A stretch of 64,000 bases of DNA from Scyliorhinus canicula (taxonomy: Eukaryota): positions 167,070,410 to 167,134,409 of the forward strand of contig NC_052147.1 in the NCBI RefSeq assembly GCF_902713615.1, read 5' to 3'. The notes beneath the pieces were generated by a model. It had not been told where the DNA came from and ran no database searches. It worked only from the letters and a program-made list of their open reading frames with translations. The translations under genes and the position numbers were made by a program. Numbering within the stretch: position 1 is the first letter of the stretch; the number at the start of each line of letters is the position of its first letter. Below are positions 5,906 to 60,797 of the stretch, one piece after another.

Positions 5906-7448
5906 GTAGGTAGAAGAAAAAATGTGAACATTAGAATGAAGTATGCGCAAGAGGCCAATATTAGATAAGAACAAGATCTTCGGTAATTGTTAGGTTTTAG
6001 GAGATTACAGAGATATAAGGTAATAGCATATTATTTAGGTGCTTAAGTGTATTCAGGTAGTGGGCAATAACTGGCAAATGATCTACTTTCACATTTATTA
6101 GGAGAATTTGAAACTTAGTTGGTGCGCAGGTGCACGGTATGTAATGTAACAACACAAGAATATAAGAAATATTAGCAGGAGTCGGCCACACAGTCCCTCG
6201 TGTCTGCTACAGCATTTAATCAGATTTGATTATGGCCTTAACTCCACTTTCCTGCTTCCACACCTATAATCCCCTTGTCGATCAAAGGACTATGTTTCAT
6301 CAAATAAAAGCTGAGAAATGTATGAATATCGGTCTCCAGTTCAATCCTTCACTGCCTGGCTACCTGAGTTGTGACATATGAACATATGAACATAGGAATT
6401 AGGAGCAGGAGTAGGCAACTCGGCCCCTCGAGCCTGTTCCACCATTCAATAAGATCATGTCTGATCTGATTGTAACCTCAACCCTCATTCCCACCAAACG
6501 CTATTAATCTTTCTCCCTCTTGTTTATCAAAAATCTATCGACAGATGCGTTAAAAACTATTAATGGAGTCTTCTTCTGGTGCCTCTGGAACAAGAGAGCT
6601 CCAAATAGGATTCACGACCCTCTGAGAGAAAATAAATTCTTCTCATCCTAATTTAAAAGGGTGACATCTAACATCGGGGAAAAGATATGGAGGAATATAA
6701 AAACAGAGAGGAGAATTTTGAAATGGAGCTGTTGCTAAGAAAAGAAGCCAATGCAGGAATTGGTTATAAGGCTATAAAATTTAGGAGCAGAAACAGGCCA
6801 TTCAGCCCATCGAATCTGCTCTTACATTCACTGAGATCATGACTGATCTGACATGATAATTTTCAACTCCACTTTCCTGCCTTAACCCCATAACCCTTTG
6901 ATTCCCTTGCTGATTATAAACCATAAGATGGAGGAGCAGAAGTAGGCCATTTAACCCATTGATGGGTGAACAGAACTTGCTGTGAGTTAGGAATTTAGAA
7001 GAGTTGAAGTTTCCGACTGGAACCTGGGTGGCCACGCTTGAGTGCATTGGAACAGTTAAACAGCATTAACAAACAGAGCAAGTAGAGAGTTTGAAAGAGG
7101 TGGTGATCAGTACCAATGTAATAATCTGCTGATTATGCAGCCCCAAAACATCAAAGTATTTGTATAGATGTAAAGCTTTGCCAAAGTGACAAGCATTCAC
7201 CTATTTTATACCTGTAAGCAGAATAAATAATAAACAAATAACGATGTCCAGTTTATAACAACACTGCAGAGTTCACAGTTGAAAGTCTTTGTCTGTTCCA
7301 CTTTGAGAATAGCTCTAGTCTCATTCTTTGTTTTCCTTTTTAACTACAGGACAATCAAAATGACATGAAAGCAAAACAAGAAGAACCAATCACAATCTAC
7401 TGCTCTGAATAATGGTGTATTCTGTGACACATTTCAATTCTTGGTCTG

Positions 7449-7520
7449 TTTTTGATGATGTGCGCTTGAGATTGTTTGAAATAACAAAGGTCTCTCACAA
7501 TGGCCTCTCAAACATATAAA
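7449..7520 (+). promoter_or_regulatory. Gene 1 core promoter: TATAAA (7515-7520), Sox-like AACAAAG (7483-7489), degenerate Maf half-site (TTTTTGATGA)
   Basis: Same motif order and spacing as in the gene 2 and gene 3 promoters. Sox and Maf control of gamma-crystallin promoters is established in other vertebrates. Confidence 0.65.
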
Positions 7521-7579
7521 TACTGAACACCCAGAGCAATAATGTGTCAGTCTCTTGCTTTTCCAACAGTGAGCTCAAA

Positions 7580-10500
7580 ATGGGAAAGGTAAGGTTAACT
7601 GTCATATTTTCACCTTATCAATAATTGGTTGGAAAATACAAATATTTCATTTCATCTTCTTTCCTCACAGGTCACCTTTTACGAGGACAGGAACTTCCAG
7701 GGTCGGCACTATGAGTGCAGCAGTGACTGTGCTGACCTGTCCCCTTACTTCAGCCGCTGTAACTCCATCCGTGTTGAGAGTGACTGGTGGGTGATGTATG
7801 AGAAACCCAATTACATGGGATACCAGTATGTTCTGAGCAGGGGAGAATATCCTGACTACCAGCGCTGGATGGGATTCAATGACAATATCAGGTCATGTCG
7901 CTCCTACCCACACGTGAGTAATACAATCTTGATAGGCATCAATGAACTCGTCAACTGATTTATATTGTAATCCTCTGTTTATCGATTTCTTTAATAAATT
8001 AAAAAATCCGACGGTTTCCTATTACCACTTTCCTTTAATGTATTTCCTTCATGATTAATACTAATATTAATCTGAAGTCTAAATTGTAAACTGCAATTGG
8101 TTGGCCTACGCTGTAACATTCAGGATTTTCCTCAGCTCTGATTGACCCCTAACAAAAATCCTGAATGTTACAGCATAGGTCAACGATTGCAGTTTACAAT
8201 TTAGATTTCAGATTAAAATTTGAAAATTCCGGAAGTGCTGAATACACCACTGGCTTTGAAGGTTGAATTTCCATTAATCTACCACAGAAGTTACACTGAT
8301 AAATCTGTTCAACCGCTGAATAAATTCCCAGTGTTTGGAAAGGAAAGAATGTTAATAAAGAAAGTGCTCAAGAGTTGGGAGAATTATAGTTTGAATTAGT
8401 GCAGCGACAAACATATTTATAGATATGGCCAACGCCACTTGATGAATAACTCCATCAGGAAGCAGAGCACAGTAAAAGTCCCCAGACCTTTTTCCATTCC
8501 TTTCCAATTGATGTACCCAAGAGTAATCAAAGTGATTTCTTAGGAAAATATTGACAGAAATAACAGATGAAAATGCATAGTTGATTAATAATTGAGAGTT
8601 GGGTTTCAAAGTTGGTACCCCTCACAAGGGTCATGAGGTATCACTCATTGATCACACTGTGGGCCTGTTGAGTACGAGGCGCAAACTCGTCCAACTGGGA
8701 CTCATTATTGAAGGTTTTAAATGCTGTTCAACACCCTGACTAGGAGTTCCTGTTACTCCCAGGCTGGGACACTGGTGTTTTATGCCACGGGTGCAGCTTT
8801 ACTTGTGAGTTGAAATAAATTTGATTTAACCTTTATCTTCGTGCCTCCTGGATTACCACATTAAGTAATAGCTTTATTGTCCATTAGTACATGACATAAC
8901 CCTACCTTCCACTGCATCACCAGGAGACACTTTGGATTGCTTTTGTAATGAACACATCTTTTACGTAACTGTATCATCACCCTGACTATGGCTGGGAGAC
9001 TGTCGAGGAGGAATTGGCATACCATGCTTGAGGAACAGATACAATAAGTACAGAATATCTATTTATGGTGGGTAGGAATGTTTAGATGACATTGTGCGAA
9101 GAAGAGCTGAACATTTTGGGAGTAAAATTAAGAAGCACTTCCCCATGCAGAGAGTGGTAGAAGTTTGGAACTCTCTCTGCAGAAGGCAATGAATGCTGGC
9201 TAGATCGTGAATTTTGTTGACCAAAGTTATTAAAGGATATCTAGTAAAGGAATGTATATGTCGTTAGGTCAGAGATCAGCATATTGAATTGTGAAACAGG
9301 ATTGTTATGACTCTCATGAGATCTATGGGGATGACCCGAGTGATCTGCCTATGGGTCTCATGGGAATGGAAGCCCTCCCACTGATGGGCAGAGGCCTAGC
9401 AGCTGAAGGTCATGGAATCGACCCTTAAAAGCCGTCCCAGATTGGGACCAGCATAATCGGTAGCCATGGTTGGGACCTACGTGCTGTACGCTTCATTGTG
9501 GCCTTTTCCTTTGATTGGAAATAACCCTCCATTTTGAATCACCTTCTCTGGTCTCCTGAGCTTTTATGTTTTTTATTTATTTATTTACTTATTTTTTAAA
9601 ATTTAGAGTACCCAATTAATGTTTTCCAATTATGGGGCACTTTAGTGTGGCCAATCCACCTAGCCTGCACATCTTTGGGTTGTGAGGCGAAACCCACGCA
9701 AACACGGGGAGAATGTGCAAACTCCACATGGACAGCGGCCCAGAGCTGGGATCGAACCTGGGACCTCGGCGCCGTGAGGCAGCAGGGCTAACACACTGTG
9801 CTACCTTGCTGCCCTCCTGAGCTTTTATAAGGCTCAAGGGGTTAAAGGGCCCATTCATGTTCCCATGTTCCCAGCAAATGTATGTACCCCACTGAATGCC
9901 AAATCAGTATTCAAAGATTGAATTCTCATTTCCATTCAACCAGGGAAGCCTAGAGTGCGACTTCAATCGAAAACCATCAGTTCATAACGTTTAGCAGGAA
10001 TAGTTTTTATTGAATATTTGGTGATAGATTGCTGGATATCTGATAGCCAAACAAAAACATGTTGGAAATACACATTCATTCTGTCAACATCCATTAACAG
10101 AAAAGGTTGACTCATGTTTTGATGGAGAATTTTCACCAAAGCTGCTGTGGGTTACCTGATAACAAAATCAACCCCTTTGCAATAATCTTTTGAGTGTTGA
10201 ATAGATATATTTATACTTGTCTGTCAAATGTTTGATTTTTTCTATGAAGAATATAGGAAATAAGAGCAGGAGTAGGCTATTCGGCCCCTCAAGCCTGCTC
10301 CACCATTCAGTTAAATCATTGCTGATGTACCTCAAAGCCAGTTTCCTGCACTATCCCTGTATCTCATTATATATTTAAATGTATCAATCTCAGTAATGAA
10401 CATACTCTGACTCTGCCTCTACAGCCCTCTAGGGTAGAAAATTCTAACGATTCATCACCCTCAGACTGAAGAAATTCCTCCTTGCCTCAGAGCTAAATTA

Positions 10501-17747: not shown

Positions 17748-18653
17748 AAACAACAAAGAACAAAGAGCTATAGCACAGGAACAGGCCCTTCAGTCCTCCA
17801 AGCCTGTACCGATCACGTCTCCGATCTAGAACTACCTACCGCCTGTATCCTTCTATACCCCATCTGTTCATGTGCCTATCTAGATAAGTCTTAAAGGTCG
17901 CTAACGTATCTGCCTCAACCACCTCACATAGCAGTGCATTCCAGGCTACCACCACCTCTGTGTAAAAAACTTCCCTCGCACACCTCCACTGAACCAAACA
18001 CCTCTCACCTTGAACTTGTGCCCCTTGTAATATTCAATTCCTCCCTGGGAAAAGCCTCCAACTGTTCACCCTATCTATACCGCTAATAATTTTATAAACT
18101 TCTACCAGGTCGCCCCTCAACCTCCGTATTTCTAGGGAGAACTATCCCAGTTTATTCAATCTCTACTCATAGCTAATACCCTCCATAGCATGCAACATCC
18201 TGGTAACCTTTTCTGTACTCTCTCCAAAACCTCCATGTCCTTCTGGCAGTGCAATGACCAGAATTGGATACAGTATTCCAAAGGTGGCCTAACCAATGTT
18301 CTATGTAACTGTAACATAATTTTCGAGCTTTTATACTCTAGACTCCATCCTATGAAGGTAAGCATGCCAAATGCTTTCTTTATCACTATTTCCACCTGTG
18401 CTGCCACTTTTAAGGATCTGTGGACCTGCATACCCAGATCTCTCTGTGTCGCTAGGCTCCTGATTGTTCTGCCATTTATTTTATAACTCCCACCTGAATT
18501 GAATGTACCAAAATGCATCACCTCGCATTTGTCTGGGTTAAATTCCATCTGCCAATTCTCCGCCCAATTTTGCAGCCTTTCTATATTCTGTTGTATTCTC
18601 TGACAATCTTCATCACTATCTGCAACTCCTGCAATCTTAGTATCATCTGCAAA
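17748..18653 (-). mobile_element. CR1 LINE 3' fragment
   Basis: ORF 18156-18548: EFNPDKCEVMHFG..LVRPPLEYCIQFWS..LERVQKR. Confidence 0.85.
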
Positions 18654-30724: not shown

Positions 30725-31934
30725 TTTAACCAATTCTTGATAAGTTTTGTCACCAGTCAGTCAGGTAGGACCAAACCTCTGGGCAAACATCTGCTTCCAA
30801 TTGCACGAAGAAAAGCAGGGAGCTGAATATCTTCTCAAACGTCATTGGCCAGGACATAAAAGTGGAATCTCTCTGCATAGGATTTCCAGTTTTCTGAAAC
30901 TACCTCAAATGGCTCTCTTGCAACATCCTTTATATCAATGTTCTGTTGTAAATACAGTGAATAAGCCAATTGTATCAGCTAGTGATACCCAAATTTATTT
31001 CTCCTTTTTGCTCCTTCTACCTCAGTGTCTACTCTACTGCACATGATGAGCGTTGCAGCCTGAACTTCTTGTGTTGCTGGATTAACATTAAGATCTGGAT
31101 GCTTCTCTTTCTTTATTTGCCCATTAACCTGACTTGTCCAATGCCAGTTCTGGGGAGCGATGTGTGAAGTGCACAACTCTGATGATTGTTGCGCGATGCC
31201 CGTTGATCTGCCTTAAGGTTGACCGTCAACAGTTTTGATTTTCTTTCACTTCGAATCCATTCATTGCTGTCAAGTTTTCTTTTTATCCTCCTGCGTATTG
31301 TATTTGCTGGATGAAAAGACTGCCAATACTGAGGCACGTGTGTTGAATACAATAATCAACAGAGGTTTTTTAGATGGTTGTGAACTGCTCAAAGGCTTAG
31401 TCTCGATTGACTCTAAGCCCACGAAGTAGCTGATGATGTCATCGACTATCACGTGACTCAACTCTTAAAGGGACCATGCAATACACAACAATATCAACCA
31501 ACATGTATAAGATATGGCTCCTGGCAATTGTAGCCACTGTGCCTAAGCAGGGAAGGGTTCAGATGAGGAGTGCCGGGGGGTTGGTTTGAGAGCATACTAG
31601 TGTGAGGTCCTGTGAGGTGGCAGTGTGTGAGATTATGGTGACATTCCAAGAGTGACAAAAGGGTGGAGCGCATATAAGGAACAGGGAGCACTTACCTAGG
31701 CTGATCGGAGTAGGTCATTTATCTATTTTTTGCACTCTACACCCATTCTCTTAGTCAAACTGCTGCCGCTGACCATTGCTGCCATTGTCTCCCAAGCAGG
31801 ATTCATCACCTTGCTGGAGGGCCTCCTGCCATCTCAAGGGTATATGATAACCTGCTTCACCTCCACGACATCCCAGCAAATGGCTGAGGGCCCCTTCCGT
31901 GAATTGAGGTTTTCTCACTGCCATCCTCCTGGCA

Positions 31935-32190
31935 GACTCAAAAATAGCTTCTTCCCCGCTGTTATTAGACTCCTAAACGACCCTCTAATGGACTGACCTG
32001 ATTAACACTACACCCCTGTATGCTTCACCCGATGCCAGTGTTATGTAGTTACATTGTGTACCTTGTGTTGCCGTATTATGCATTTTATTTTATTTTCCCT
32101 TCTTTTCATGTACTTCATGATCTGTTGAGCTGCTCGCAGGAAAATACTTTTCACTGTACCTCAGTACACGTGACAATAAACAAAATCCAA
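31935..32190 (+). mobile_element. Rex/Babar LINE 3' end
   Basis: KNSFFPAVIRLLNDPLMD* and 3'UTR homologous to 21610-21880. Confidence 0.75.
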
Positions 32191-32435
32191 AGTGCTTTGG
32201 AGCCATTTAAATGTTCATTGAAATGCTCAGATGATCTATTGGATGGGTGAAAGAGATGCTTCATGCCTCAGGCATGGGGTTTTTCACGTGGGGGGGAAAT
32301 TGTTTTTTTCAAAGAGCCTTAAATTTGCGGTCAGGGTTGTGCCATCGGGGCCGACGAGAACCCCGCCAATTTCCAGGCCAAAAATGGAACTTTAACATTT
32401 TTTGGAAAATTTTGCCCCATAACGTTACTGGTCTA

Positions 32436-32920
32436 AAAAACAAAGAACAGTACAACACAGAAACAGGCCCTTCAAAGCTGCACTGATCATGATGCCTGTC
32501 TAAACTAAAGCCTTCTGCATTTCTGGGGACCATATTGCTCAATTCCCATTCTATTCATGTATTCGTCAAGATGCCTCTTAAACGCTGCTTTTGCATCTGC
32601 TTTTGCACCCTGGAAGTTCCTGTCCTCGTAAAAGATAATCTGTGGGGAAAGGAAAGATACAATTAAATCAATAATTTCCTAAATTTGATGTATTGTATAC
32701 AATATATTAGTAATGATGAAAAATATGACAGATAACCTTACCTTGTCCATATTGAGAATCACAGTCAGTTAGATAACTAACTGGACATCGCACACACCCT
32801 GCAGTGTGTTCGAAGCACTCACCACCCTCTGTGTAAAAAACTTGCCTCACACTTCTGCTCTAATCTTACCACCTTGCACTTTAAACATTTGTATCCTAGT
32901 AATTGACTTTTCCACTGCGT
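32436..32920 (-). mobile_element. CR1 3'-end fragment split by the inverted crystallin piece
   Basis: Both halves align with the CR1 end at 59845-60180. Confidence 0.7.
32607..32796 (-). pseudogene. Inverted gamma-crystallin gene fragment (5'UTR, exon 1 ATGGACAAG, intact intron 1, first 33 nt of exon 2)
   Basis: Reverse complement aligns with 33188-33366. It sits inside a CR1 3'-end fragment. Confidence 0.9.
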
Positions 32921-32954
32921 TAAAAAGCGTAAAAGACAATTAAAACAAAACATA

Positions 32955-33186
32955 AAAGAACTTTGGATTTTTGCCATTTGAATTTTTCTACAAACAATTA
33001 AAACATCATTAAAGCAGAATGAAAAGAATCAGTGTCCTATCTAGAAACCTGAACAAGGGGATTGTGTCTGCAATGACTGGAGTTTTTTTTTCTAATTTGA
33101 TTTTTGCTGATATACTCTGTTGAAACTATTAGAATAACAAAAGTATTCCCTACAGTGGCGTTTCAGTCCAGTGTATAAATATTGAG
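32955..33186 (+). promoter_or_regulatory. Gene 2 promoter: TTTTTGCTGA Maf half-site (33101-33110), AACAAAAG Sox-like site (33136-33143), TATAAAT (33174-33180)
   Basis: About 230 bp of non-TE sequence strongly conserved with 55075-55305; TATA lies about 55-60 bp upstream of the ATG. Confidence 0.75.
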
Positions 33187-33233
33187 CTGTGTGCGATGTC
33201 CAGTTAGTTGTCTAACTGACTGTGATGCTCAAC

Positions 33234-35866
33234 ATGGGCAAGGTAAGGTCATATTTTTCATCATTGCTAATATATTGTATCGAATACATCAAATTTAGGA
33301 AATTATCGATTTAATTGTATCTTTTCCTTTCAGGTTATCTTTTACGAGGACAGGAACTTCCAGGGTCGGCACTATGAGTGCAGCAGTGACTGTGCTGACC
33401 TGTCCCCTTACTTCAGCCGCTGTAACTCTATCCGTGTTGAGAGTGACTGGTGGGTGATGTATGAGAAACCCAATTACATGGGATACCAGTATGTTCTGAG
33501 CAGGGGAGAATATCCTGACTACCAGCGCTGGATGGGATTCAATGACTGTGTCAAGTCATGTCGTACTTTTCCTCACGTATGTTCTTACTACCTATCAGTT
33601 ATTAGTTTCCAATTATTTTCTGATGTGACATATATTATAACTGATCAGTAATTTTGTGCTATTCTAAGCAATTTATTCCCAGCCCCTTCATCAATTTTGT
33701 TATAATCCTTTATATTAATTGAATGGTCATTATTCTCATTCCCTTTTCCTGTCATTAGCAACAAACCCATAATTTAGTTATGTGTTTTGTGTTGCTGCAA
33801 ATGTTGGAAAACACTGAAATACAAGAAAGAGCCAGGATTGGAAATATAGAGTTTAAAAAAGACACGTCAGTATTGTCCTGACATTTTTCCAATTATTTGC
33901 AAATGTGCATTCAATACACAGAAAAAGTAAGGTGCAAATGCTGCAGAATCATTCTTTGTACCCATGTGTACTTCTCTGCCTTGTGGTGGATTTGACCTGG
34001 ACTCTATGTAATTAATATGATAGCACTGGCAGAGACAGTACTGTGGTAAAGCCTTAGCACCAACAGAAAGGACAATAACTGAAATGGTGGCACAGTATGT
34101 GTGTGTTGAACCATAGAACCCTACAGTGCAGAAGGAAGCTATTTGGTGCATCGAGGCTGCACCAACCCTCTGATAGAGCACCCTACCCTGCCCTACCCCA
34201 ATAACCCCACCTAAGCAGCACATCTTTTGACACAAAGAGGCATATTTTTTTAGCATGGCCAATCCACATAACTTGCACATCTTTGTATTGTGAGAGGAAA
34301 TCGGAGCACCTGGAAGAAACCCACACAGATGGGAAAGTGCAAACTCCATACAGACCCAAGGCCAGAATAAGCCTAGCTGTCGGGCGCTGTAAAGCTGCAG
34401 TGCTAACCACCGTGCTGCCCCTAAAAAAGCTGTTCATTGTTGGTGACTCAGGTCAGGTCCTCACCTGACAGATTTAGCCTTTATCTTGTTGGGAACTTGA
34501 TTATAATCAATTAATCTCCAAATCTGATCTCTGATCTCCAAGATAGTCTAATGAAGATAGTCAAGTCTTAAAGGAAATACCTAGCTGCCTGTTAAAACCT
34601 TATCTCATAACATAGAACATAGAACAGTACAGCACAGAACAGGCCCTTCGGCCCTCAATGTTGTACCGAGCAATGATCACCCTACTCAAACCCACGTATC
34701 CACCCTATACCCGTAACCCAACAACCCCCCGCCTTAACCTTACTTTTTTTTAGGACACTACGGGCAATTTAGCATGGCCAATCCACCTAACCCGCACATC
34801 TTTGGACTGTGGGAGGAAACCGGAGCACCCGAAGGAAACCCACGCACACACGGGGAGGACGTGCAGACTCCACACAGACAGTGACCCAGCCGGGAATCGA
34901 ACCTGGGACCCTGGAGCTGTGAAGCATTTATGCTAACCACCATGCTACTGTGCTGCCTACATCAAGAATAACTATTCTTGATGTTCAGTTTTGCATGTCT
35001 TTCTTCATAGGTGAAAAACCTTAGTTCCAAGATGAAATTTGTCATTTTTGTCCGGGACAAAGAAGTACCAGTAGCAATGCCAATGCAATTTCATTAATTT
35101 ATTGTACACAGATAGGACGGCACGGTGGTGCAGTGGTTAGCATTGCTGCCTCACAGCGCCAAGGACCCGGGTTTGATCCTAGCCCCAGGTCACTGTCCAG
35201 GTAGAGTTGAACATTCTCCCCGTGTCTGCGTGGGTCTCACCCCCACAGCCCAAATATTTGTATGGTAGATGGATTGGCCACACTAAATTGTCCCTTAATT
35301 GGAAAATATATATATTGGGAACTTTAAAAAGAATTTTAATTGTACACAGATGAAATAACACATTATCCACATTACACTCAAATATCTTGTGCTTCCGTTT
35401 TATACGTTTTCAGCATTGTTTCTAATGGATTCATTGCAATTGGATGCATTTAGTGAATGGTCAGTAATCGATTCCTGAGTCGCTTATAACTTTTACCTTT
35501 GGTAATACATTTCATCTTACTTGTTCTAAAGAACTCTACCACAAACATACATGTTGCTGCTTCATGAATGTTATATGTTATTTAATACAGTACCGAGGTG
35601 GAAACTACAGAATGAAGATTTATGAGAGGCCTGACTTTGGAGGACAGATGATGGAATTCATGGAGGACTGTCCATCTGTCTACGATCGTTTCCGTTACCG
35701 TGACATCCACTCTTCCCATGTGATGGATGGTTATTGGATCTTCTATGAACATCCCAACTACAGAGGCCGACAGTACTTCTTGAAACCTGGTGAATACAGG
35801 AGATACAGTGACTGGGGCGGCTACAACTCAACTATCGGATCTTTCAGGCGAATGAGAGATTTCTAA
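33234..35866 (+). CDS. cryg: Gamma-crystallin gene 2, join(33234..33242,33334..33576,35591..35866), 175 aa
   Basis: ATGGGCAAG|GT; cag|[16 protein letters not shown]...TFPH|GT; atacag|[18 protein letters not shown]...RRMRDF*. Open frame, canonical splice sites. Confidence 0.95.
34610..34957 (-). mobile_element. Young full-length V-SINE in gene 2 intron 2 (an older copy lies at about 34110-34420)
   Basis: Near-identical to 60398-60747; (CATAGAA)n tail. Confidence 0.85.
35115..35338 (+). mobile_element. V-SINE with A-rich tail and 13-bp TSD
   Basis: ATTGTACACAGAT at 35101-35113 and 35339-35351. Confidence 0.8.
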
Positions 35867-43841: not shown

Positions 43842-44635
43842 AGAACATAGAACATAGAACATAGAACATTACAGCGCAGTACAGGCCCTTCGGCCCACGA
43901 TGTTGCACCATCCTGTGAAACCCTTCTAAAGTCCCTCTACACTATTCCCTTATCGTCCATATGCCTATCCAATGACCATTTGAATGCGTTTAGTGTTGGC
44001 GAGTCCACTACTGTTGCAGGCAGGGCATTCCACGCCCTTACTACTCTCTGAGTAAAGAACCTACCTCTGACATCTGTCCTATATCTATCTCCCCTCAATT
44101 TAAAGCTATGTCCCCTCGTGCTGGACATCACCGTCCGAGGAAAAAGGCTCTCGATGTCCACCCTATCTAATCCTCTGATCATCTTGTATGCCTCAATTAA
44201 GTCCCCTCTTAGCCTTCTTCTCTCTAACGAAAACAGCCTCAAGTCCTTCAGCCTTTCCTCATATGATCTTCCCTCCATACCAGACAACATTCTTGTAAAT
44301 CTCCTCTGTACCCTTTCCAATGCTTCCACATCCTTCCTATAATGTGGCGACCAGAACTGCACACAATATTCCAAATGCGGCCGCACCAGAGTTTTGTACA
44401 ACTGCAACATGACCTCATGGCTCCGAAACTCAATTCCTCTACCAATAAAAGCTAACACACCGTACGCCTTCTTAACAACCCTCTCAACCTGGGTGGCAAC
44501 TTTCAAGGATCTATAGACATGGACACCGAGATCTCTCTGCTCATCCACACTACCAAGAATCTTACCATTAGCCCAGTACTCTGCCTTCCTGTTATTCCTT
44601 CCAAAATTAATCACCTCACACTTTTCTGCATTAAA
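43842..44635 (-). mobile_element. Young CR1 LINE 3' fragment with an open RT C-terminal frame
   Basis: 237-aa ORF (FNAEKCEVINFG..LVRPHLEYCVQFWSPHY..FFTQRVVRAWNALP); (CATAGAA)n tail. Confidence 0.9.
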
Positions 44636-45104
44636 GAGTGGGGGAGACAATGTCAGCCATGCTTGGTGTGGAGTGGAGACCCTGAAGCTATAAGCCTCTG
44701 GTGACAGGCCAATGACCTGCTTTGGAAAACATCGCTATGGGAACAGATGAACGTCAGTCTGCCAAGTGAAGCACTAGATGCAGGAAGAAAAGCAACAACA
44801 TCACATGAATCAACAAACTGTCAAAAAACACCCCCACAGTGTAGAACAAATGACAGATCCCATGGATTTCTCAGCATCCCTTCCAGACACCAGTGATGCT
44901 GAGTCACCAAATCTCAATTAAATTCCGTCACAAGGGATTCCAATTCTGCACATTCGAAGATCTAGCCTCGGAAGTGACATTCTCTCAGCTCCAATCTTGC
45001 TCAGCTGCCCCGAGTAAATCCTGGCTGTGGACTTCCATGACCTCACTCTCAACTGGAAGGTAAGGTAAAGTTGCCATACTCCCAGGTGACCATAGATGAT
45101 CACC

Positions 45105-52980: not shown

Positions 52981-55074
52981 TGACTACGTGTCCAGCAGTG
53001 CCTCATTTCTCAGTATAAAATAATTTTTTTTTCTTGTGTTACCTTTGGTACTTTAGTCATTCCATTTAAAATTTGTGTCCTCTGGTTCACAACCCTTCTG
53101 CCAATGAGAAAAGTTTCTCTCTATCTGCTCTGTCCAGTCCCCTTGTAGTTTTGACCACCTTAATCAAACCTCTCAATCTTATCTTCTCTACGGAGTACAG
53201 ACCCAACTTCACCGAATCTGTACTGAAATTCCTATCCCTAGAACTATTCGTGTCAATGTTTCCAAGTGCTTTCACATCCTAACTAAAATGTCATGCCCAG
53301 AATTGGTTATTATGGAGGCAGTGGGCCTACCCAATGGCTGCAAAATCACAGGCGAGCATACCTCTGCCAGCCTAGAAGCCATGATGCTATTTTGTGTGGC
53401 TCAGGTAATTATTTGCAAAGGTAATCCTTCTGCCCCACTGTGGCAAGATGTTCCATCTTTAATCAGTGTTGTCAGCTCTTCAGTCACACCACTGGGAGCA
53501 GTGGCCACTGCTGGAACTGCAAATGTCCCAGGACTGATGACCCTGCAGCAAGCAAGGATGTGGGGATGGTCAGAATCTAGGGCATTGGGGAATCTTCCCA
53601 CAGGGGTAACTGTGGGTGTTATGGATGTCTGGTCAGCTCTCAACTATGGCTAAGAAACTGGACCGGATGCCACAACTGTTTTAAGTTTTTACATGGTGCG
53701 GAAATATTGATTTGTTCCAGGAGTGATAATATAAGAAATAGGGCTTGGCTATTTTATAAACAAACTTTATTAAAACAAAGCAAAAGAAAAAAACACTTAA
53801 ACTTTTACTTCAGCTCTAACAGTAACAGATTATATGTAGTTTCTTCACATTAACACATTAGTTCCCATTAAACATTGCTTTAAATAACCATGCCGCTCTC
53901 ATACCACTTATACAGACAGGCCAAGTCAATATATACATTTACAAAGCAATTTTTCTTCTGTTAGGGACATTTGTTCAGAACCCTTTCGCAAAGCCTACCT
54001 TGCTGACAACTTTCATAACCTCTCTGGTTGATTTCCACAGCCTTCTTCCAGCAACTGTTCAGAACAGTATTCTTTCTCACATTCTTCCTGAGCTCTACCC
54101 ACTCCTCAAATAAAGGTTTTCTGCAGAGGTGGCCAGACCTGAATCCATTATAGTTATCTTGGCTGTCTGATTTCCCACTTCCGTTTCCACAAAAGAACAG
54201 AGCAATGCCATTCATATGAAACTAACCTTCCATTGACAGATTAATAAGTCATCAGACTCTGTGATGGGCTGATGGCTAGTCAAACAAGGCTGTCACAAAT
54301 AACAATTGATCTTGAGTTGATCACGCTGGTTGAAGTGCGGCATCCTATATATTCTCACTAATGAGACTAAGTCTGAATGGGACAAGGTAACTCAGGCTGT
54401 GGGCATATCCCTCAGACTCTGCTGCTAGCAATCTTTTCCTTCAGTCTGTTTAACCCCTAAACTGCCTGCTATATCTTGGACCCCATTTCTGGACCCAAGT
54501 TCCTAATATTTCCCTCATGACAGGGGAAGGCCTCCTTGGGCTAGATCAAGGTGGTGCACACAGGCTTCAGTCTGGTAAAATGTCAGCGGTTGATGTAGGG
54601 GAGTTTAAGTGGCGAGTAATTGATCACATAAAGGCCTCAATTGGCCTACAGGAGGAGATTGCACACTAGCATTCTGGTATTGTACCTCTAGTGGGGAGGT
54701 GACAGAAAACACCTCCCCGCCTTCCAACAAATCTTTCAACCCTCACCTGCCAAGCTGCTCCAAGAGAGGAATGTGCAAATTCTGAGCATTACTACAGTTA
54801 AGGCTTGACCAACATTTTGAACAGCTTTATGAATTCTCCTTTAAACTTCTGTTTATAAAGCGCAGGGTCCATATTAACCACTATTTCAATCTGCCCTGAT
54901 AGCTTTAACAATTTGTAATGCATTTACACCCAGGTCTCTCTGTTCGTGCACCTCTTTTAAAACTGTTTATGTTTTATTTTAAATTACCAGAAAGGACAGA
55001 AAGATAACAAATCATTCTTGAAAACAATTGTAGTTTTTAAAAAGTGACAATACCTTTACTGGACTCAACATAAG

Positions 55075-55305
55075 TACATTTTGGATTCTTGCCATTTGAA
55101 TTTTTTGTACAAACAATTAAAACAGCATCAAAGCAGAATGGAGAGAATCAATGCTCTATCTAGAAACCTGAATAAGGGGATTTTATCTGCAATGACTATA
55201 GTTTTTTTCTAATTTGTTTTTTGCTGATATACGCTGCTGAAACTATTAGCATAACAAAAGTATTCTCAGCAGTGGCGTTTCAGTCCAGCGTATAAATATC
55301 GAGCT
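55075..55305 (+). promoter_or_regulatory. Gene 3 promoter: TTTTTGCTGA (55218-55227), a second TGCTGA, AACAAAAG (55253-55260), TCAGCA, TATAAAT (55291-55297)
   Basis: Conserved with the gene 2 promoter; motifs match Maf half-site and Sox consensus. Confidence 0.75.
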
Positions 55306-55354: not shown

Positions 55355-57848
55355 ATGGGCAAGGTAAGGTCAACTCTCATATTTTTCCCATTTACTGATA
55401 ACCTTTCATGAAATATTTATGAAATCCTAGATTCAGTGAATGCCATTTTATTCCCCACAGATTATCTTTTACGAGGACAGGAACTTCCAGGGTCGGCACT
55501 ATGAGTGCAGCAGTGAGTGTGCTGACCTGTCCCCTTTCTTCAGCCGCTGTAACTCCATCCGCGTTGAGAGTGACTGGTGGGTGGTCTATGAGAAACCCAA
55601 TTACATGGGATACCAGTATGTTCTGACCAGGGGAGAATATCCTGACTACCAGCGCTGGATGGGATTCAATGACTGCATTAGGTCATGCCGCTCCTACCCA
55701 CACGTAAGTTCTGAATTCACATGAACTATCAGTTTACAATCATTTACCGATATTCTTTATATTTGTTGTAAACCATTTAAATATGGCGACAAGAACAACT
55801 CAAAGATTGTGAATTCTCCAGTGAGTAACTCACCTTCTGAATCCCAAAGCTTGTCCACCAAATTCAGAGATGCGATGGAATTCTCTCCACCAGACTGGAT
55901 GAGAGCTGCTCCAACCACACTCAAGAAGCTCAATATTTTAGTAAGGCATGGGAAGTCCACAGCGAGTTGTGGTAAAGAAATTTATTTTACCAACAATATT
56001 ATCTACACGAGGCCTGTTACACCTCACCGGGTCTTCTCTCCTTTCTGGCCAAACTTTTATACCAGTACTGATTAGCTAGCCCGCCCCAAGCAGGGGAGCT
56101 CGTACTCCCAATGAGCTGGATGAGCCCCATGCAGTGTCTACAAAAGGGCTGGCCTGCAATATTTTGCTTCAAACGGCTGTAGTTGAAAAGTTGACAGAGA
56201 ATGTGAGTGTTGTGAAGCTGTTCCATTGTTGCGAACATCATAATTAGGCCCAGAATGCTTCTAACACACAGTCACTTTAACCTTCTAGAAATTGACCCAA
56301 CCTGGTTACTCTTCAAGTGATAGGTTTAGATACTTTCCTAGATGCCCCAGATAATGAGATGAAGCTACAGAATATTGATTGCTACATTAGCCAACTTTGG
56401 TTACTTTTTGTGGCGTGATCGCGTATTTAGCTGCTTTAGCTTCAAATTTTGGCCATACTCACAGAGTTACATAACACATTTTCACATGAGTAAACTTGCA
56501 CCAAGTTAACTGCTTCATTTCACCGTCTTTGTGGCAAATTACTTATTTTTTGAGGGGGATTATTTCAGTACTGGGATAACTGAGAAAAATATGTTCCACA
56601 CTTAATTCTCTGTCGTTTTAGTCTACAAACTCTCCAGTCCATCTGTATCCTTTTCATAGATCATAGAATCATAGAATTTACAGTGCAGAAGGAGGCCATT
56701 TGGCCCATCGAGTCTGCACCGGCTCTTGGAAAGAGCACCCTACCCAAGGTCAACGACTCCACCCTATCCCCATAACCCAGTAACCCCACCCAACACTAAG
56801 GGCAATTTTGGACACTAAGGGGAATTTATCATGGCCAATCCACCTAACCTGCACATCTTTGGACTGTGGGAGGAAACCGGAGTACCCGGAGGAAACCCAC
56901 GCACACACGGGGAGTATGTGCAGACTCCGCACAGACAGTGACCCAAGCCGGATTCGAACCTGGGACCCTGGAGCTGTGAAGCGATTGTGCTATCCCCAAT
57001 GCTACCATGCCTTTTGGCAGAAGAGGGCCAAGAAATACCAGTAACGATTGAGATCTAATTTTACTAACGATCTGTTCATAGTTAGAATAGCATCGTGACT
57101 GACAAAATAGTATATTGAAATGTCCTCGTGTTTTGTTTGTGGAAGTGCAGCCTTGATGCCAATGACAGCCAGTAATTACATTTGATGAATGGTAAACTAG
57201 TCATTTCCAAAGTTATCAACAAATTACTGCGGATGCCGGAATCTGAAACAAAAACAGAAAATACTGGACAATCTTAGCAGGTCTGACAGCATCTGTGGAG
57301 AGAGAAGGGAGCTAACAAAGAGTTGGTCAGACTCGAAATGTTAGCTCCCTTCTCTCTCCACAGATGATGTCAGACCTGCTGAGATTGTCAGGCATTTTCT
57401 GTTTTTGATTCATTTCCAAATCCTTTTTAACTTTTATTTTCATGAGCACGTGTAAGCTCAAGTACTTCACGTTTCCTGTTCTAAAAGGCATTTGCATTTG
57501 GCATTCTCTGCAGTACCTATCAACCACACATCTACTTGATGCAACTTGAATGGTATATGCTCTTTATTACAGTACCGGGGAGGCACCTACAGAATGAGGA
57601 TTTATGAGAGGCCTGACTTTGGAGGACAGATGATGGAATTCATGGAAGACTGTCCATCTGTCTACGATCGTTTCCGTTACCGTGACATCCACTCCTGCCA
57701 AGTGATGGACGGTTATTGGATCTTCTATGAACATCCCAACTACAGAGGCCGACAGTACTTCATGAGACCCGGTGAATACAGGAGATACAGTGACTGGGGC
57801 GGCTACAACTCAACTATCGGATCTTTCAGACGAATGAGGGATTTCTAA
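55355..57848 (+). CDS. cryg: Gamma-crystallin gene 3, join(55355..55363,55461..55703,57573..57848), 175 aa
   Basis: ATGGGCAAG|GT; ccccacag|[16 protein letters not shown]...SYPH|GT; attacag|[18 protein letters not shown]...RRMRDF*. Open frame, canonical splice sites. Confidence 0.95.
56656..57010 (-). mobile_element. Young V-SINE in gene 3 intron 2
   Basis: Near-identical to 5551-5905. Confidence 0.85.
57212..57412. mobile_element. Penelope-derived terminal fragment forming a hairpin with 74-bp arms in gene 3 intron 2
   Basis: 57244-57317 is inverted at 57339-57412. Arms resemble the Penelope end near 13215. Flanked by TCATTTCCAAA (57201-57211 and 57410-57420). Confidence 0.8.
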
Positions 57849-58911: not shown

Positions 58912-59750
58912 TGTCATGGGAATGTCCCTTTGAGAAATGCTTTTGTCTCATCACATGGCTTCAATGATGTCATTGTGTGAGTGGAGCTGGGCTGTGGCTC
59001 TGTGGGTTTTTACAATCGCTTTGAGTTTTGGACTGGTTTGAACTGCACAAGTTGAAAGAAGTGTCTCTACCTTCATTTTAAAAGCTGTTTCCAGACTGCT
59101 TGGAAACCTAAAAGAGATAATTGCTTTCTGGAAGGAATTCAAACTTGCTGTTTGAAAAGGGGAACAGAGTATCAATAACAGATGTGCAGGTTAGGTGGAT
59201 TGGCCATGATAAATTGCCCTTAGTGTCCAAAATTGCCCTTAGTGTTGGGTGGGGTTACTGGGTTATGGGGATAGGGTGAAGTTGTTGACCTTGGGTAGGG
59301 TGCTCTTTCCAAGAGCCAGTGCAGACTCGATGGGCTGAATGGCCTCCTTCTGCACTGTAAATTCTATGATCTATGAACAGGTCATAAACCAGTAAGAATG
59401 CTGTGTTGCTGGGCCACACCTTTGAAAAGAGGTTTCTGGTTTTACTTGGATTTTGTTGTCGAATTGGAACAGTTAACGAGGAATTTATTAAGGGTTATAC
59501 ATAGATTCTGTAGTTGTGTGGGATCTTTATGTTTGTAGTTGATAAAAATTCTGACTGTGTGTGTTTATACATACATTTACTAAATTTGTAGAATAAAGCT
59601 TTTTTAAAAATTAAAAGTGCCTAAGAACTCTGTTGAATAACACCTGAAGGGCAGGCTCTTCTGCTCTTCCTAGCCAAATTCAATAAACAGTTGAGGGTCA
59701 GGTGAACTCCATGACATACTTTGGAGTTTTCTAAACCCTGATCCATAACA
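58912..59750 (+). mobile_element. Solo LTR containing a truncated SINE (about 59180-59375, AACAG duplication)
   Basis: TGTCATGG...CCATAACA inverted ends, flanked by CTTC/TTTC. Confidence 0.7.
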
Positions 59751-59844: not shown

Positions 59845-60797
59845 GAACAAAGAACAAAGAAAAGTGCAGCACCGAAACAGGCCCTTCAGCCCTCCAAGCC
59901 TATGCCGACCATGCTGCCTGTCTAAACTAAAATCTTCTACACTTCTGGGGTCCGTATCCCTCTATTCCCAACCTATTCATGTATTTGTCAAGATGCCCCT
60001 TAAATGTCACTATCGTCCCTACTTCCACCATCTCCTCCGGCAGCGAGTTCCAGGCATCCACTACCCTCTGTGTAAAAAAAACTTGCCTCAACAATCTCCT
60101 CTAAACCTTGCCCCTCGCACCTGAAACCTATGCCCCGTAGTAATTGACCCCTCTACCCTGGGAAAAAGCCTCTGACTATCCATTCTGTCTATGCCCCTCA
60201 TAATTTTGTAGACCTCTATCAGGTCGCCCCTCACCTCCGTCATTCCAGTGAGAACAGACCGAGTTTATTCAACCGCTCCTCACAGCTATACATTTGTCTT
60301 GTTGGTGAATGGGGTGCAATGCCAGCGAGGAGCGGTGGGAGTTAGGGGGATGAGTATGCCTTCTGTCATGGGAATGTCCCTTTGAGGAATGCATTTAGGG
60401 GCAGCACGGTAGCATAGTGGTTAGCATAAATGCTTCACAGCTCCAGGGTCCCAGGTTCGATTCCCGGCTGGGTCACTGTCTGTGCGGAGTCTGCACGTCC
60501 TCCCCGTGTGTGCGTGGGTTTCCTCCGGGTGCTCCGGTTTCCTCCCACAGTCCAAAGATGTGCGGGTTAGGTGGATTGGCCATGCTAAATTGCCCGTAGT
60601 GTCCTAAAAAGTAAGGTTAAGGGGGGGATTGTTGGGTTACGGGTATAGGGTGGATACGTGGGTTTGAGTAGGGTGATCATGGCTCGGCACAACATCGAGG
60701 GCCGAAGGGCCTGTTCTGTGCTGTACTGTTCTATGTTCTATGTTCTAATGTCCTCCATACCAGGCAACATCCTGGTAAATCTCTTCTGCACCCTCAT
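59845..60797 (-). mobile_element. CR1 3' fragment interrupted by a chimeric SINE insertion (60287-60747)
   Basis: The CR1 text ..CTCCTCACAGCTA resumes as ATGTCCTCCATACCAGGC after the insertion. Confidence 0.8.
60398..60747 (+). mobile_element. Young full-length V-SINE
   Basis: GGGGCAGCACGGTAGC head with A/B boxes; (TTCTATG)n tail. Confidence 0.9.

Follow-up and report, generated by a model that had tools for sequence, protein, structure and literature searches.

A 190-nt fragment upstream of a gamma-crystallin gene (gene 2) of the catshark Scyliorhinus canicula is the reverse complement of the 5′ end of that gene. It lies cleanly inserted within the remnant of a CR1-like LINE, is bordered by short microhomologies, differs in age from its host and carries an older state of the first intron of gene 2. 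It is probably, with a probability of about 0.7, the neutral relic of one copy-and-paste error at the DNA level, either a template switch or a templated repair patch. The window, meaning the whole stretch of DNA analysed, comprises 64,000 nt of contig NC_052147.1 and holds three gamma-crystallin paralogues, genes 1 to 3. In the catshark, 40 clustered gamma-crystallin genes have been described, and all copies except two are specific to the eye or embryonic eye (PMC11979771).

Gene 2 and its inverted copy

The gene and the copy of its 5′ end comprise the following features.
33234–35866, plus strand: coding region of gamma-crystallin gene 2 (exons 33234–33242, 33334–33576 and 35591–35866).
32949–33187, plus strand: gene 2 proximal promoter, 87% identical to a block of gene 3, located between the arms and uninterrupted by the insert.
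33188–33366, plus strand: donor arm in gene 2, from the leader through exon 1 and intron 1 to base 33 of exon 2.
32607–32796, minus strand: inverted copy of the gene 2 5′ end, including leader and core-promoter tail, exon 1, intron 1 and the start of exon 2.
32751–32796, minus strand: leader and core-promoter tail of the copy (46 nt).
32742–32750, minus strand: exon 1 coding part of the copy, ATG-GAC-AAG (9 nt).
32640–32741, minus strand: whole intron 1 of the copy (102 nt, against 91 nt in gene 2).
32607–32639, minus strand: exon 2 start of the copy (first 33 nt).

As read from the sequence, gene 2 has its ATG at 33234, exon 1 ends at 33242 and intron 1 (91 nt) extends from 33243 to 33333. 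The ORF of 175 amino acids is intact and displays 90–94% identity to shark proteins annotated as “gamma-crystallin S-1-like”. Genes were located for the closest of these proteins, from Scyliorhinus torazame and Cetorhinus, while exact-product look-ups with the junction-spanning ORF and the exon 3 ORF returned no record. The promoter block (239 nt) aligns with positions 55067–55304 of gene 3 and contains a Maf-half-site-like TGCTGA (33104–33109) and a Sox-like AACAAAG (33135–33141). The donor arm starts at 33188, which is 14 nt past the first T of the TATA box TATAAATA (33174–33181). The spacing between a TATA box and its start site follows an established rule, and an initiator-like CCAGTT motif (A at 33202) is located ~14 nt downstream of 33188; thus, the copy probably includes untranscribed DNA.

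Alignment of 32796–32607 with 33188–33366 by blastn confirmed the inverted relationship proposed in a first-pass annotation of this DNA, with 88.5% identity over 191 columns (E 5.6e-67). A repeat search resolved the match into three gap-free inverted blocks, comprising 32648–32729/33248–33329 (82 nt, 93%), 32732–32796/33188–33252 (65 nt, 92%) and 32607–32653/33320–33366 (47 nt, 89%). The copy is 11 nt longer than the gene 2 arm (190 versus 179 nt) and the arms are separated by a 391-nt spacer that contains the TATA box and the 239-nt gene 3-like block, in agreement with the length difference and the promoter-bearing spacer of ~390 bp described in that annotation. On the minus strand the copy presents a splice donor between 32742 and 32741 and an acceptor between 32640 and 32639, precisely where a 32742 to 32639 splice had been predicted. 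Both splice sites and the ATG are intact, and the reading frame continues into the CR1 ORF2 tail up to a stop, a total of 47 codons. Retention of the intron, from which an mRNA retrocopy had been called unlikely, rules out a processed retrocopy. The entire insert (190/190 nt) is crystallin-derived, with no filler or foreign sequence, and inspection of sequence and alignment revealed neither poly(A) nor terminal inverted repeats at the insert; its ends read GAAGTTCC... and ...CATCGCACA, which do not form an inverted repeat. Two candidate origins were rejected on these grounds, namely a class 1 LINE-mediated insertion (no poly(A)) and a Pack-type transposon (ends not inverted repeats and all 190 nt alignable to gene 2).

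The host repeat and the insertion junctions

The host element and its two junctions with the crystallin fragment are located as follows.
32797–32930, minus strand: upstream, 5′-truncated part of the host CR1-like remnant, recognised by tblastn with the ORF at 43937–44650 (minus strand).
32795–32801, no strand assigned: right junction 7-mer CACCCTG, of which only CA is common to the crystallin end.
32606–32612, no strand assigned: left junction 7-mer CACCCTG, in which ACCCTG is the reverse complement of gene 2 CAGGGT (33361–33366).
32435–32606, minus strand: 3′ terminal part of the host CR1-like remnant, comprising the ORF2 end (..FKRHLDEYMNRMGIEQYGPQKCRRL, then stop) and the 3′ tail.

With the window as database, tblastn matched the C-terminal CR1 ORF 43937–44650 (minus strand) to 32930–32802, read in that direction (E 8e-7), and the nearest Atlas cluster of this ORF is “Reverse transcriptase family protein” (score 0.96). 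Two other copies of the repeat in the window, at 59849–60148 and 17755–18015, are continuous across the insertion point. On the minus strand, the repeat copy at 17.7–18.7k displays FADD ... LVRPPLEYC ... RRLRGDL, which places a reverse-transcriptase FADD box upstream of the ORF2 C-terminus. Because Pfam gave no match for 19 repeat ORFs, the LINE identity was taken from the motifs, tblastn and Atlas, while the clade, taken to be CR1, was assigned by resemblance to the C-terminal motifs of chicken CR1. The motifs, the tblastn match and the other copies together support the earlier placement of the fragment inside a CR1 end. The sense strand of CR1 is the minus strand and the crystallin fragment is co-oriented with it. 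An Rfam scan of 31000–34800 returned only a sub-threshold SNORD57 match (31038–31102; 22 bits, with a gathering threshold of 47; E 0.33), which was taken as chance.

Both CACCCTG 7-mers reported at the junctions are present in the sequence, and the microhomology is partly common to crystallin, as had been noted: it extends over 5–7 nt at the left junction (ACCCTG/CAGGGT) and over 2–3 nt at the right junction (CA/TG). The 3′ end of the sense copy passes directly into CR1 GCAAAAGCAG..., which is alignable to other CR1 copies and presents no A-run and no TTTT/A target. Since the two CR1 halves are contiguous in the two other copies, the alignment leaves at most 0–6 nt of CR1 unaccounted for at the insertion, and the departure and return points, as judged from these copies, are adjacent and the insertion is clean. 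The CACCCTG flanking both sides would be long enough for a target-site duplication (at least 5 bp), but six of its bases are shared with crystallin and CR1 has an internal near-repeat at this point. In the pre-insertion CR1, whose sequence derives from two or three diverged copies only, CAGGGTG may have been present either once, resulting in an apparent 7-bp duplication, or twice as an internal near-repeat, with no duplication.

Older intron state and relative ages

A four-way alignment revealed that TTATCTG, located after GTAAGG, is present in the copy, gene 1 and gene 3 and absent in gene 2. Similarly, CCCA precedes the acceptor CAG in the copy and in gene 3 (CTCA in gene 1) and is absent in gene 2. 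The proposal that the copy preserves an older state holds on this alignment: it keeps the 7 nt and 4 nt that intron 1 of gene 2 has lost. Among the three paralogues in the window, gene 2 is by far the closest to the fragment (88.5% identity by blastn), followed by gene 3 (75%) and gene 1 (73%). Intron 1 is only 65–67% identical between paralogues; the copy therefore belongs to the gene 2 lineage and arose when the paralogues had long been separate, with gene 2 itself as the most probable donor.

Copy and gene 2 differ by 10–12 substitutions over 179 positions (5.6–6.7%; JC 0.07), or ~3% per lineage, and by three indels. In contrast, the CR1 flanks differ at 31/184 sites (16.8%; 15.3% without CpG) from the state common to the 59.8k and 17.7k copies, two copies only being used for the ancestral state in this dating. 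A CR1 lineage change of ~15–17% against ~3% for the insert indicates that the fragment entered a pre-existing CR1 remnant, and it looks several-fold younger than its host, whose flanks are approximately five times more diverged. This difference in age from the carrying LINE copy argues against a chimera made during retrotransposition. The longest exact run between the arms is 32 nt, and an exon 2 stretch of 30 nt is identical in four copies, comprising the fragment and genes 1 to 3. Arm divergence approximates the rate expected for unconstrained DNA, with no sign of constraint or homogenisation. With exact identity of at most 32 nt, a promoter flip-flop by recombination between the arms is very unlikely.

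A DNA template switch as the probable origin

In the proposed sequence of events, the starting state would be an old, 5′-truncated CR1-like tail located ~250–750 bp upstream of gene 2. A growing plus-strand end, during replication or break repair, would leave CR1 at ...GCACCCTG and pair again, through 5–7 nt of microhomology, with the plus-strand CAGGGT in exon 2 of gene 2 (33361–33366). It would then copy ~180 nt backwards, passing from the beginning of exon 2 across intron 1 and exon 1 into the leader and stopping at 33188, just below the TATA box, before returning to CR1 beside the departure point through 2–3 nt of microhomology. Later, both copies would have drifted, accumulating the 10–12 substitutions, and intron 1 of gene 2 would have lost its 7 and 4 nt. 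The best reading of the event order is 1-4-3-2 in the four-point description, an unusually large case of the type that makes inverted repeats; this type accounts for 31% of high-confidence human–chimp template-switch events (PMC5453318). The ~180-nt tract and the jump of 390–760 bp exceed the tens of bases of catalogued events, which speaks against a short switch, although such a jump is still well within the span of one replication fork. Microhomology-mediated template switching, as put forward in the first-pass annotation, is thus also the best mechanism here, given the younger insert, the lack of poly(A) and terminal inverted repeats, and a start in probably untranscribed DNA. We infer the neutrality of the fragment and the enzymology, which could be either a fork switch or synthesis-dependent microhomology end joining. 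The CR1 co-orientation, the age gap, the absence of poly(A), terminal inverted repeats and foreign sequence, and the start upstream of the predicted start site are new here.

The same templated insertion could have used a gamma-crystallin paralogue located outside the window as donor, in which case the older-state features would be those of that paralogue. About 40 paralogues may exist beyond the window, considering the 40 clustered catshark genes (PMC11979771), and three indels separate the fragment from gene 2. These indels are, however, simple gene 2 deletions as polarised by genes 1 and 3, gene 2 is far the closest of the visible paralogues in spite of the fast divergence of intron 1, and a gene 2 donor is only 391 nt away; an outside donor is therefore considered unlikely. 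A different template, rather than a different donor, is invoked if nascent unspliced gene 2 pre-mRNA, from the cap to ~+180, was reverse-transcribed into a CR1 break, with a LINE reverse transcriptase or some other polymerase as the enzyme, or if the CR1 reverse transcriptase jumped to it during insertion. The fragment has the same sense as CR1 and, as a short nascent transcript would, starts near the predicted transcription start and stops soon after the intron; each of its junctions shows microhomology, a trait of class 2 templated sequence insertions (PMC5110952), and tethering of nascent RNA would account for the closeness of donor and target. An RNA template is also kept alive by the derived 8-nt gene 2 deletion at the boundary, because the ancestral start site was possibly only 3–9 nt from the copy end. 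However, ~14 nt upstream of the present initiator-like motif are included in the copy, neither poly(A) nor a TTTT/A target is present, and the five-fold more diverged CR1 flanks make co-insertion unlikely. Transcription in the germline or early embryo would also be needed, in contrast with the eye or embryonic-eye specificity of all but two catshark copies (PMC11979771), and local inverted switches of a DNA template are more common. Taken together, an RNA template is judged distinctly unlikely. In its cis form, a repair patch from the nascent transcript of gene 2 itself, running from the start to ~+180, would explain the start near the start site, the kept intron and the end just past the intron, and it appears improbable.

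Further origins are more improbable still. The fragment might be what is left of a larger, head-to-head inverted duplication of gene 2, a piece carried by a gene-capturing DNA transposon, or an artefact of assembly, a group of readings that is highly improbable. A trimmed larger duplication is excluded by both flanks being contiguous halves of one CR1 remnant, while transposon cargo is opposed by the lack of terminal inverted repeats and of any non-crystallin cargo. An assembly artefact is very unlikely, since identity between the arms is 88%, not 100%, with 10–12 substitutions and three private indels, unlike a false fold-back join. Within the window, 228 of the 241 31-mers of 32570–32840 are unique, and about 4 of 22 sampled 31-mers of this interval are present in a DNA run (X1).

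Evidence bearing on a regulatory function

The preferred reading, a relic of DNA copying, treats the fragment as neutral. A functional element would silence or buffer crystallin expression, either by a transcript that spans both arms and folds into ~180 bp of dsRNA or by a plus-strand transcript of the fragment, antisense to the first part of exon 2 in all paralogues; a third possibility is divergent transcription yielding a spliced mini-ORF. The predicted fold of a 796-nt RNA spanning both arms reaches -342 kcal/mol, compared with -167 ± 6.6 for shuffled sequences (z -26.7), but so strong a fold is a trivial consequence of any inverted repeat. The 30-nt exon 2 stretch identical in four copies, the intact ATG and splice sites with their 47-codon frame, and the demonstration by maize Mu killer that such hairpins can silence (PMC3440606) would all be compatible with function. 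In contrast, identity between the arms has fallen to 88%, no exact run exceeds 32 nt, there is no sign of constraint or homogenisation, and the conserved promoter block shared with gene 3 does not include the insert. In addition, no transcription unit reading through both arms was seen in the window sequence, where the nearest upstream plus-strand gene is gene 1, ~20 kb away, and antisense RNA arising upstream of the promoter would contain the copy in sense and would not be complementary to the mRNA. RNA runs contain 12–20% of the words of 32300–33700, approximately the gene 2 exon share, which is weak evidence against function; weak too is the finding, not drawn from an RNA search, that no RNA run is among those listed for the words of the fragment itself. 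A functional role thus appears very improbable; the fragment has the look of a common scar left by an error in DNA copying and now decaying, not of a regulatory device.

Comparison with known systems and significance

FoSTeS/MMBIR is usually invoked for events of kb to Mb, while polymerase theta inserts are usually shorter than 30 nt. The catshark fragment shares with FoSTeS/MMBIR and with polymerase theta-mediated MMEJ the 2–7 nt of microhomology, a nearby templated insert and the lack of transposon hallmarks, although its size lies between the two scales. That size is also close to one Okazaki fragment, a similarity noted as a thought only. Short-range template-switch mutations (Loytynoja & Goldman 2017, PMC5453318) display the same local reverse-complement copy with the donor kept and with adjacent departure and return points, and both generate a new inverted repeat able to fold as a hairpin. 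The catalogued events involve tens of bases copied from a few tens of bases away, whereas here ~180 nt came from 390–760 bp, and the single-step nature of the change was inferred from the other CR1 copies in the window. Class 2 templated sequence insertions, which are RNA-derived patches of double-strand breaks (PMC5110952), are similarly a few hundred bases long and show microhomology, possible intron sequence, and neither poly(A) nor a clear target-site duplication. Donors of that class usually lie far away and are confined to transcribed regions; the catshark donor, by contrast, is inverted and 391 nt away, and between the TATA box and the start site the copy appears to take in bases that are not transcribed. 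LINE retrocopies, class 1 TSIPs and LINE chimeras have in common with the fragment a position within a LINE tail and the LINE sense, but here poly(A) is lacking, the intron is retained, the insert has LINE sequence on either side and the LINE flanks are much older than the insert.

Hairpin-RNA loci arising from inverted partial gene duplications include the fly hpRNA and mouse oocyte endo-siRNA loci. Maize Mu killer (PMC3440606) is likewise an inverted partial copy of the 5′ part of a gene that yields dsRNA if read through. It forms, however, a ~4 kb hairpin from a flanking gene and produces siRNAs, whereas the catshark arms are 180 nt long and 88% identical, and no promoter for read-through was seen.

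An RNA-template or hairpin reading, if true, would be more important, and the cis RNA patch would represent a natural vertebrate germline case of nascent RNA repairing DNA beside its own gene; present evidence points away from both the RNA template and the hairpin. Located outside the conserved promoter block, the insert has little import for lens biology. Its modest value is that, within a vertebrate gene cluster described as a hotspot of duplications, it offers a clean local case of an inverted templated insertion that is large (~180 nt) and can be dated, and that it is a “fossil” of gene 2 intron 1, retaining the 7 and 4 nt that the gene lost after copying.

An inverted, intron-containing copy of a crystallin 5' end

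The plus strand of the window carries three gamma-crystallin genes, each with an intact reading frame of 175 codons, whose products display 90-98% identity to shark proteins annotated 'gamma-crystallin S-1-like' (best matches in Scyliorhinus torazame, Mustelus asterias and Cetorhinus maximus).

Gamma-crystallin genes, plus strand
Gene 1: ATG 7580; exon 2 7671-7913; exon 3 11641-11916
Gene 2: ATG 33234; exon 2 33334-33576; exon 3 35591-35866
Gene 3: ATG 55355; exon 2 55461-55703; exon 3 57573-57848

Outside these genes, crystallin-like sequence occurs in the window solely at 32607-32796, the reverse complement of 33188-33366 at the 5' end of gene 2 (88.5% over 191 columns, E 5.6e-67, blastn), which a repeat search revealed as three gap-free inverted blocks. 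The copy comprises 46 nt 5' of the ATG, three exon 1 codons, the entire intron 1 and nucleotides 1-33 of exon 2, with ATG, intron donor and acceptor all intact. The inserted bases all align to gene 2, and no poly(A), terminal inverted repeat or filler sequence was identified at the insert. Re-reading of the sequence confirmed the coordinates proposed in the first-pass annotation, which was also correct that the copy is 11 nt longer than the gene 2 arm and that CACCCTG heptamers occupy 32606-32612 and 32795-32801.

Among the three paralogues, identity is 92-95% in exons 2 and 3 and just 65-67% in intron 1, a pattern of exon-restricted conservation or homogenisation. A promoter block of 239 nt is conserved between genes 2 and 3, while the gene 1 promoter is only ~55% identical to theirs. 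Promoter alignment revealed proximal motifs common to all three genes, namely a T-rich stretch with TG(C/A)TGA, AACAAAG, CA(G/A)TGGC and TATAAATA; following names used for mammalian gamma-crystallin promoters, we take TG(C/A)TGA to be Maf-half-site-like and AACAAAG Sox-like.

Conserved proximal promoter motifs
33100-33181, gene 2
~55220-55299, gene 3
~7445-7530, gene 1

Around gene 3, two SINE-family copies form an inverted pair (56668-56858 / 59180-59370; 191 nt, 97% complementary) that flanks exon 3 on both sides, and intron 2 contains an inverted repeat (57244-57317 / 57339-57412; 74-nt arms, 92%, 21-nt loop) ~160 nt upstream of that exon.

Ancestral intron state and age of the copy

Four-way alignment of the copy with genes 1-3 revealed that the seven bases following the intron donor GTAAGG are present in the copy and in genes 1 and 3, and that the acceptor CAG is preceded by CCCA in the copy and gene 3 and by CTCA in gene 1. 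Only gene 2 lacks both, so that deletions of 7 nt and 4 nt occurred in it after copying, in agreement with one of two earlier proposals, that the copy records gene 2 before two deletions. Between TATA box and leader, gene 2 displays another derived deletion.

Derived deletions at the 5' end of gene 2, plus strand, relative to genes 1 and 3
33182-33199: 8 nt, TATA box to leader
33248: 7 nt, after the intron 1 donor
33329: 4 nt, polypyrimidine tract

At its right edge (33189/33190), the 8-nt deletion meets the copy end to within 2 nt, which may reflect chance or a shared lesion site.

Copy and gene 2 differ by 10-12 substitutions (5.6-6.7%, JC ~0.07), of which three or four fall to the copy and about two to gene 2 when polarised by outgroup, the others being ambiguous. 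As this compares with 65-67% intron 1 identity between paralogues, the copy derives from the gene 2 lineage, and a templated insertion with a different paralogue as donor is unlikely. Intron 1 of genes 2 and 3 presents a JC distance of ~0.45, which would place the copying about one-sixth of the way back to their split. A catshark-specific crystallin clade has been dated to <180 My (PMC11979771); if genes 1-3 belong to it, the age of the copy would not exceed the order of tens of millions of years.

The host CR1-like LINE and the junctions

The insert is flanked by the two halves (32435-32606 and 32797-32930) of a single repeat, other copies of which (59849-60148 and 17755-18015) are continuous across the insertion point. 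Minus-strand translation of the repeat copies yields a LINE ORF2 C terminus, including, at 17.7-18.7k, FADD ... LVRPPLEYC ... RRLRGDL, motifs that we take to be those of chicken CR1. A better-kept ORF, 43937-44650 (minus strand), matches 32930->32802 (tblastn, E 8e-7); its closest Atlas cluster is 'Reverse transcriptase family protein' (0.96) and its structural neighbours are endonuclease-RT proteins. A Pfam search of the repeat ORFs gave no match. The ORF2 motifs led us to accept the host as a CR1 end, as first described. CR1 reads in sense on the minus strand, as does the crystallin fragment, so the two are co-oriented. An abundant SINE-like family has its terminal 40-60 nt in common with the LINE tail, as is typical of SINE/LINE partnerships.

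SINE-like copies sharing the LINE tail
34598-34850
43851-43909
59846-59894
17752-17815

Of 184 sites at which the copies at 59.8k and 17.7k agree, 31 differ in the host CR1 (16.8%; 15.3% without CpG contexts). Change per lineage is ~3% for the insert versus 15.3-16.8% for the host, indicating that the CR1 remnant is several-fold older, subfamily differences allowed for. This age gap, together with frameshifts and stops in the CR1 part 32797-32930, argues that the fragment entered a resident remnant rather than being picked up during CR1 retrotransposition.

On the minus strand, the first joint passes from CR1 ...CTGCAGGGTG to crystallin TGTGCGATG..., and the second from crystallin ...CTTCCAGGGT to CR1 GCAAAAGCAG.... 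CAGGGT belongs to gene 2 itself (33361-33366), which gives one junction a microhomology of 5-7 nt; that of the other is 2-3 nt. In other CR1 copies, 17 nt separate CTGC from GCAGAT/GTAGGG, with a near-repeat (e.g. TGTG-AGGTGG), and the host minus the insert has 11 nt if CAGGGTG is counted once and exactly 17 nt if twice, so the apparent 7-bp duplication may not be a duplication.

Mechanism of copying and proposed function

With a nearby tract copied as its reverse complement, the donor kept, departure and return points adjacent and microhomology at both joints, the copy has the anatomy of a template-switch-and-return event, consistent with the microhomology-mediated template switching initially proposed. 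In the four-point model, the plus strand presents the switch points in the order 1 (32606-32612), 4 (adjacent), 3 (33188) and 2 (33366). This type, 1-4-3-2, gives rise to an inverted repeat and represents 31% of high-confidence human-chimp events (Loytynoja and Goldman, PMC5453318); the present copy is larger in scale than those four-point switches, ~180 nt from 390-760 bp away. Its joints resemble those of class 2 templated sequence insertions (PMC5110952), although the donor distance differs. A stalled fork or synthesis-dependent microhomology-mediated repair of a CR1 break would both be compatible with the sequence. We put the probability that the copy is a neutral relic of a DNA-level event at roughly 0.7.

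The copied tract starts at 33188, 14 nt past the first T of TATAAATA (33174-33181); an initiator-like CCAGTT follows ~14 nt downstream, its A (33202) being 28 nt from where the TATA box begins. The usual TATA-to-start spacing puts the first 14 nt of the tract outside the transcript, a prediction that favours a DNA template. At the ancestral spacing, before the 8-nt deletion, the predicted start would lie just 3-9 nt inside the copy, so start-site position alone is compatible with an RNA template. Such an origin is nevertheless quite improbable, given the age difference between CR1 and insert and the lack of poly(A), and would require germline expression of a family whose catshark copies are reported to be, all but two, eye-specific (PMC11979771).

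The first-pass annotation had also envisaged a silencing or decoy element, through RNA across both arms folding as dsRNA or through a transcribed copy. RNA spanning both arms would fold at -342 kcal/mol versus -167 +/- 6.6 for shuffles, but a strong fold is expected of any inverted repeat, the arms have diverged to 88% identity and share exact runs no longer than 32 nt, the closest upstream plus-strand gene ends ~20 kb away, and the promoter block that gene 2 shares with gene 3 lies downstream of the insert. Antisense transcription running upstream from the gene 2 promoter would yield RNA that carries the copy in sense and thus could not pair with gene 2 mRNA. RNA runs from this organism contain 12-20% of the words in 32300-33700, roughly the share of gene 2 exons, and none was listed with the fragment's own words, a weak negative, as the search was not aimed at RNA and contigs drop rare species. 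Nothing suggests RNA across both arms; a functional element is thus very improbable, and the likeness to Mu killer-type hairpin loci (PMC3440606) is one of geometry only. If transcribed and spliced, minus strand 32400-32750 would encode 47 codons, ATG-GAC-AAG and 11 crystallin codons followed by the CR1 ORF2 frame to the CR1 stop; the chance of an accidental in-frame join is one in three. All remaining explanations together carry hardly any weight. Local inverted templated insertion by template switching is a known kind of mutation, of which the copy is a new and rather large case.
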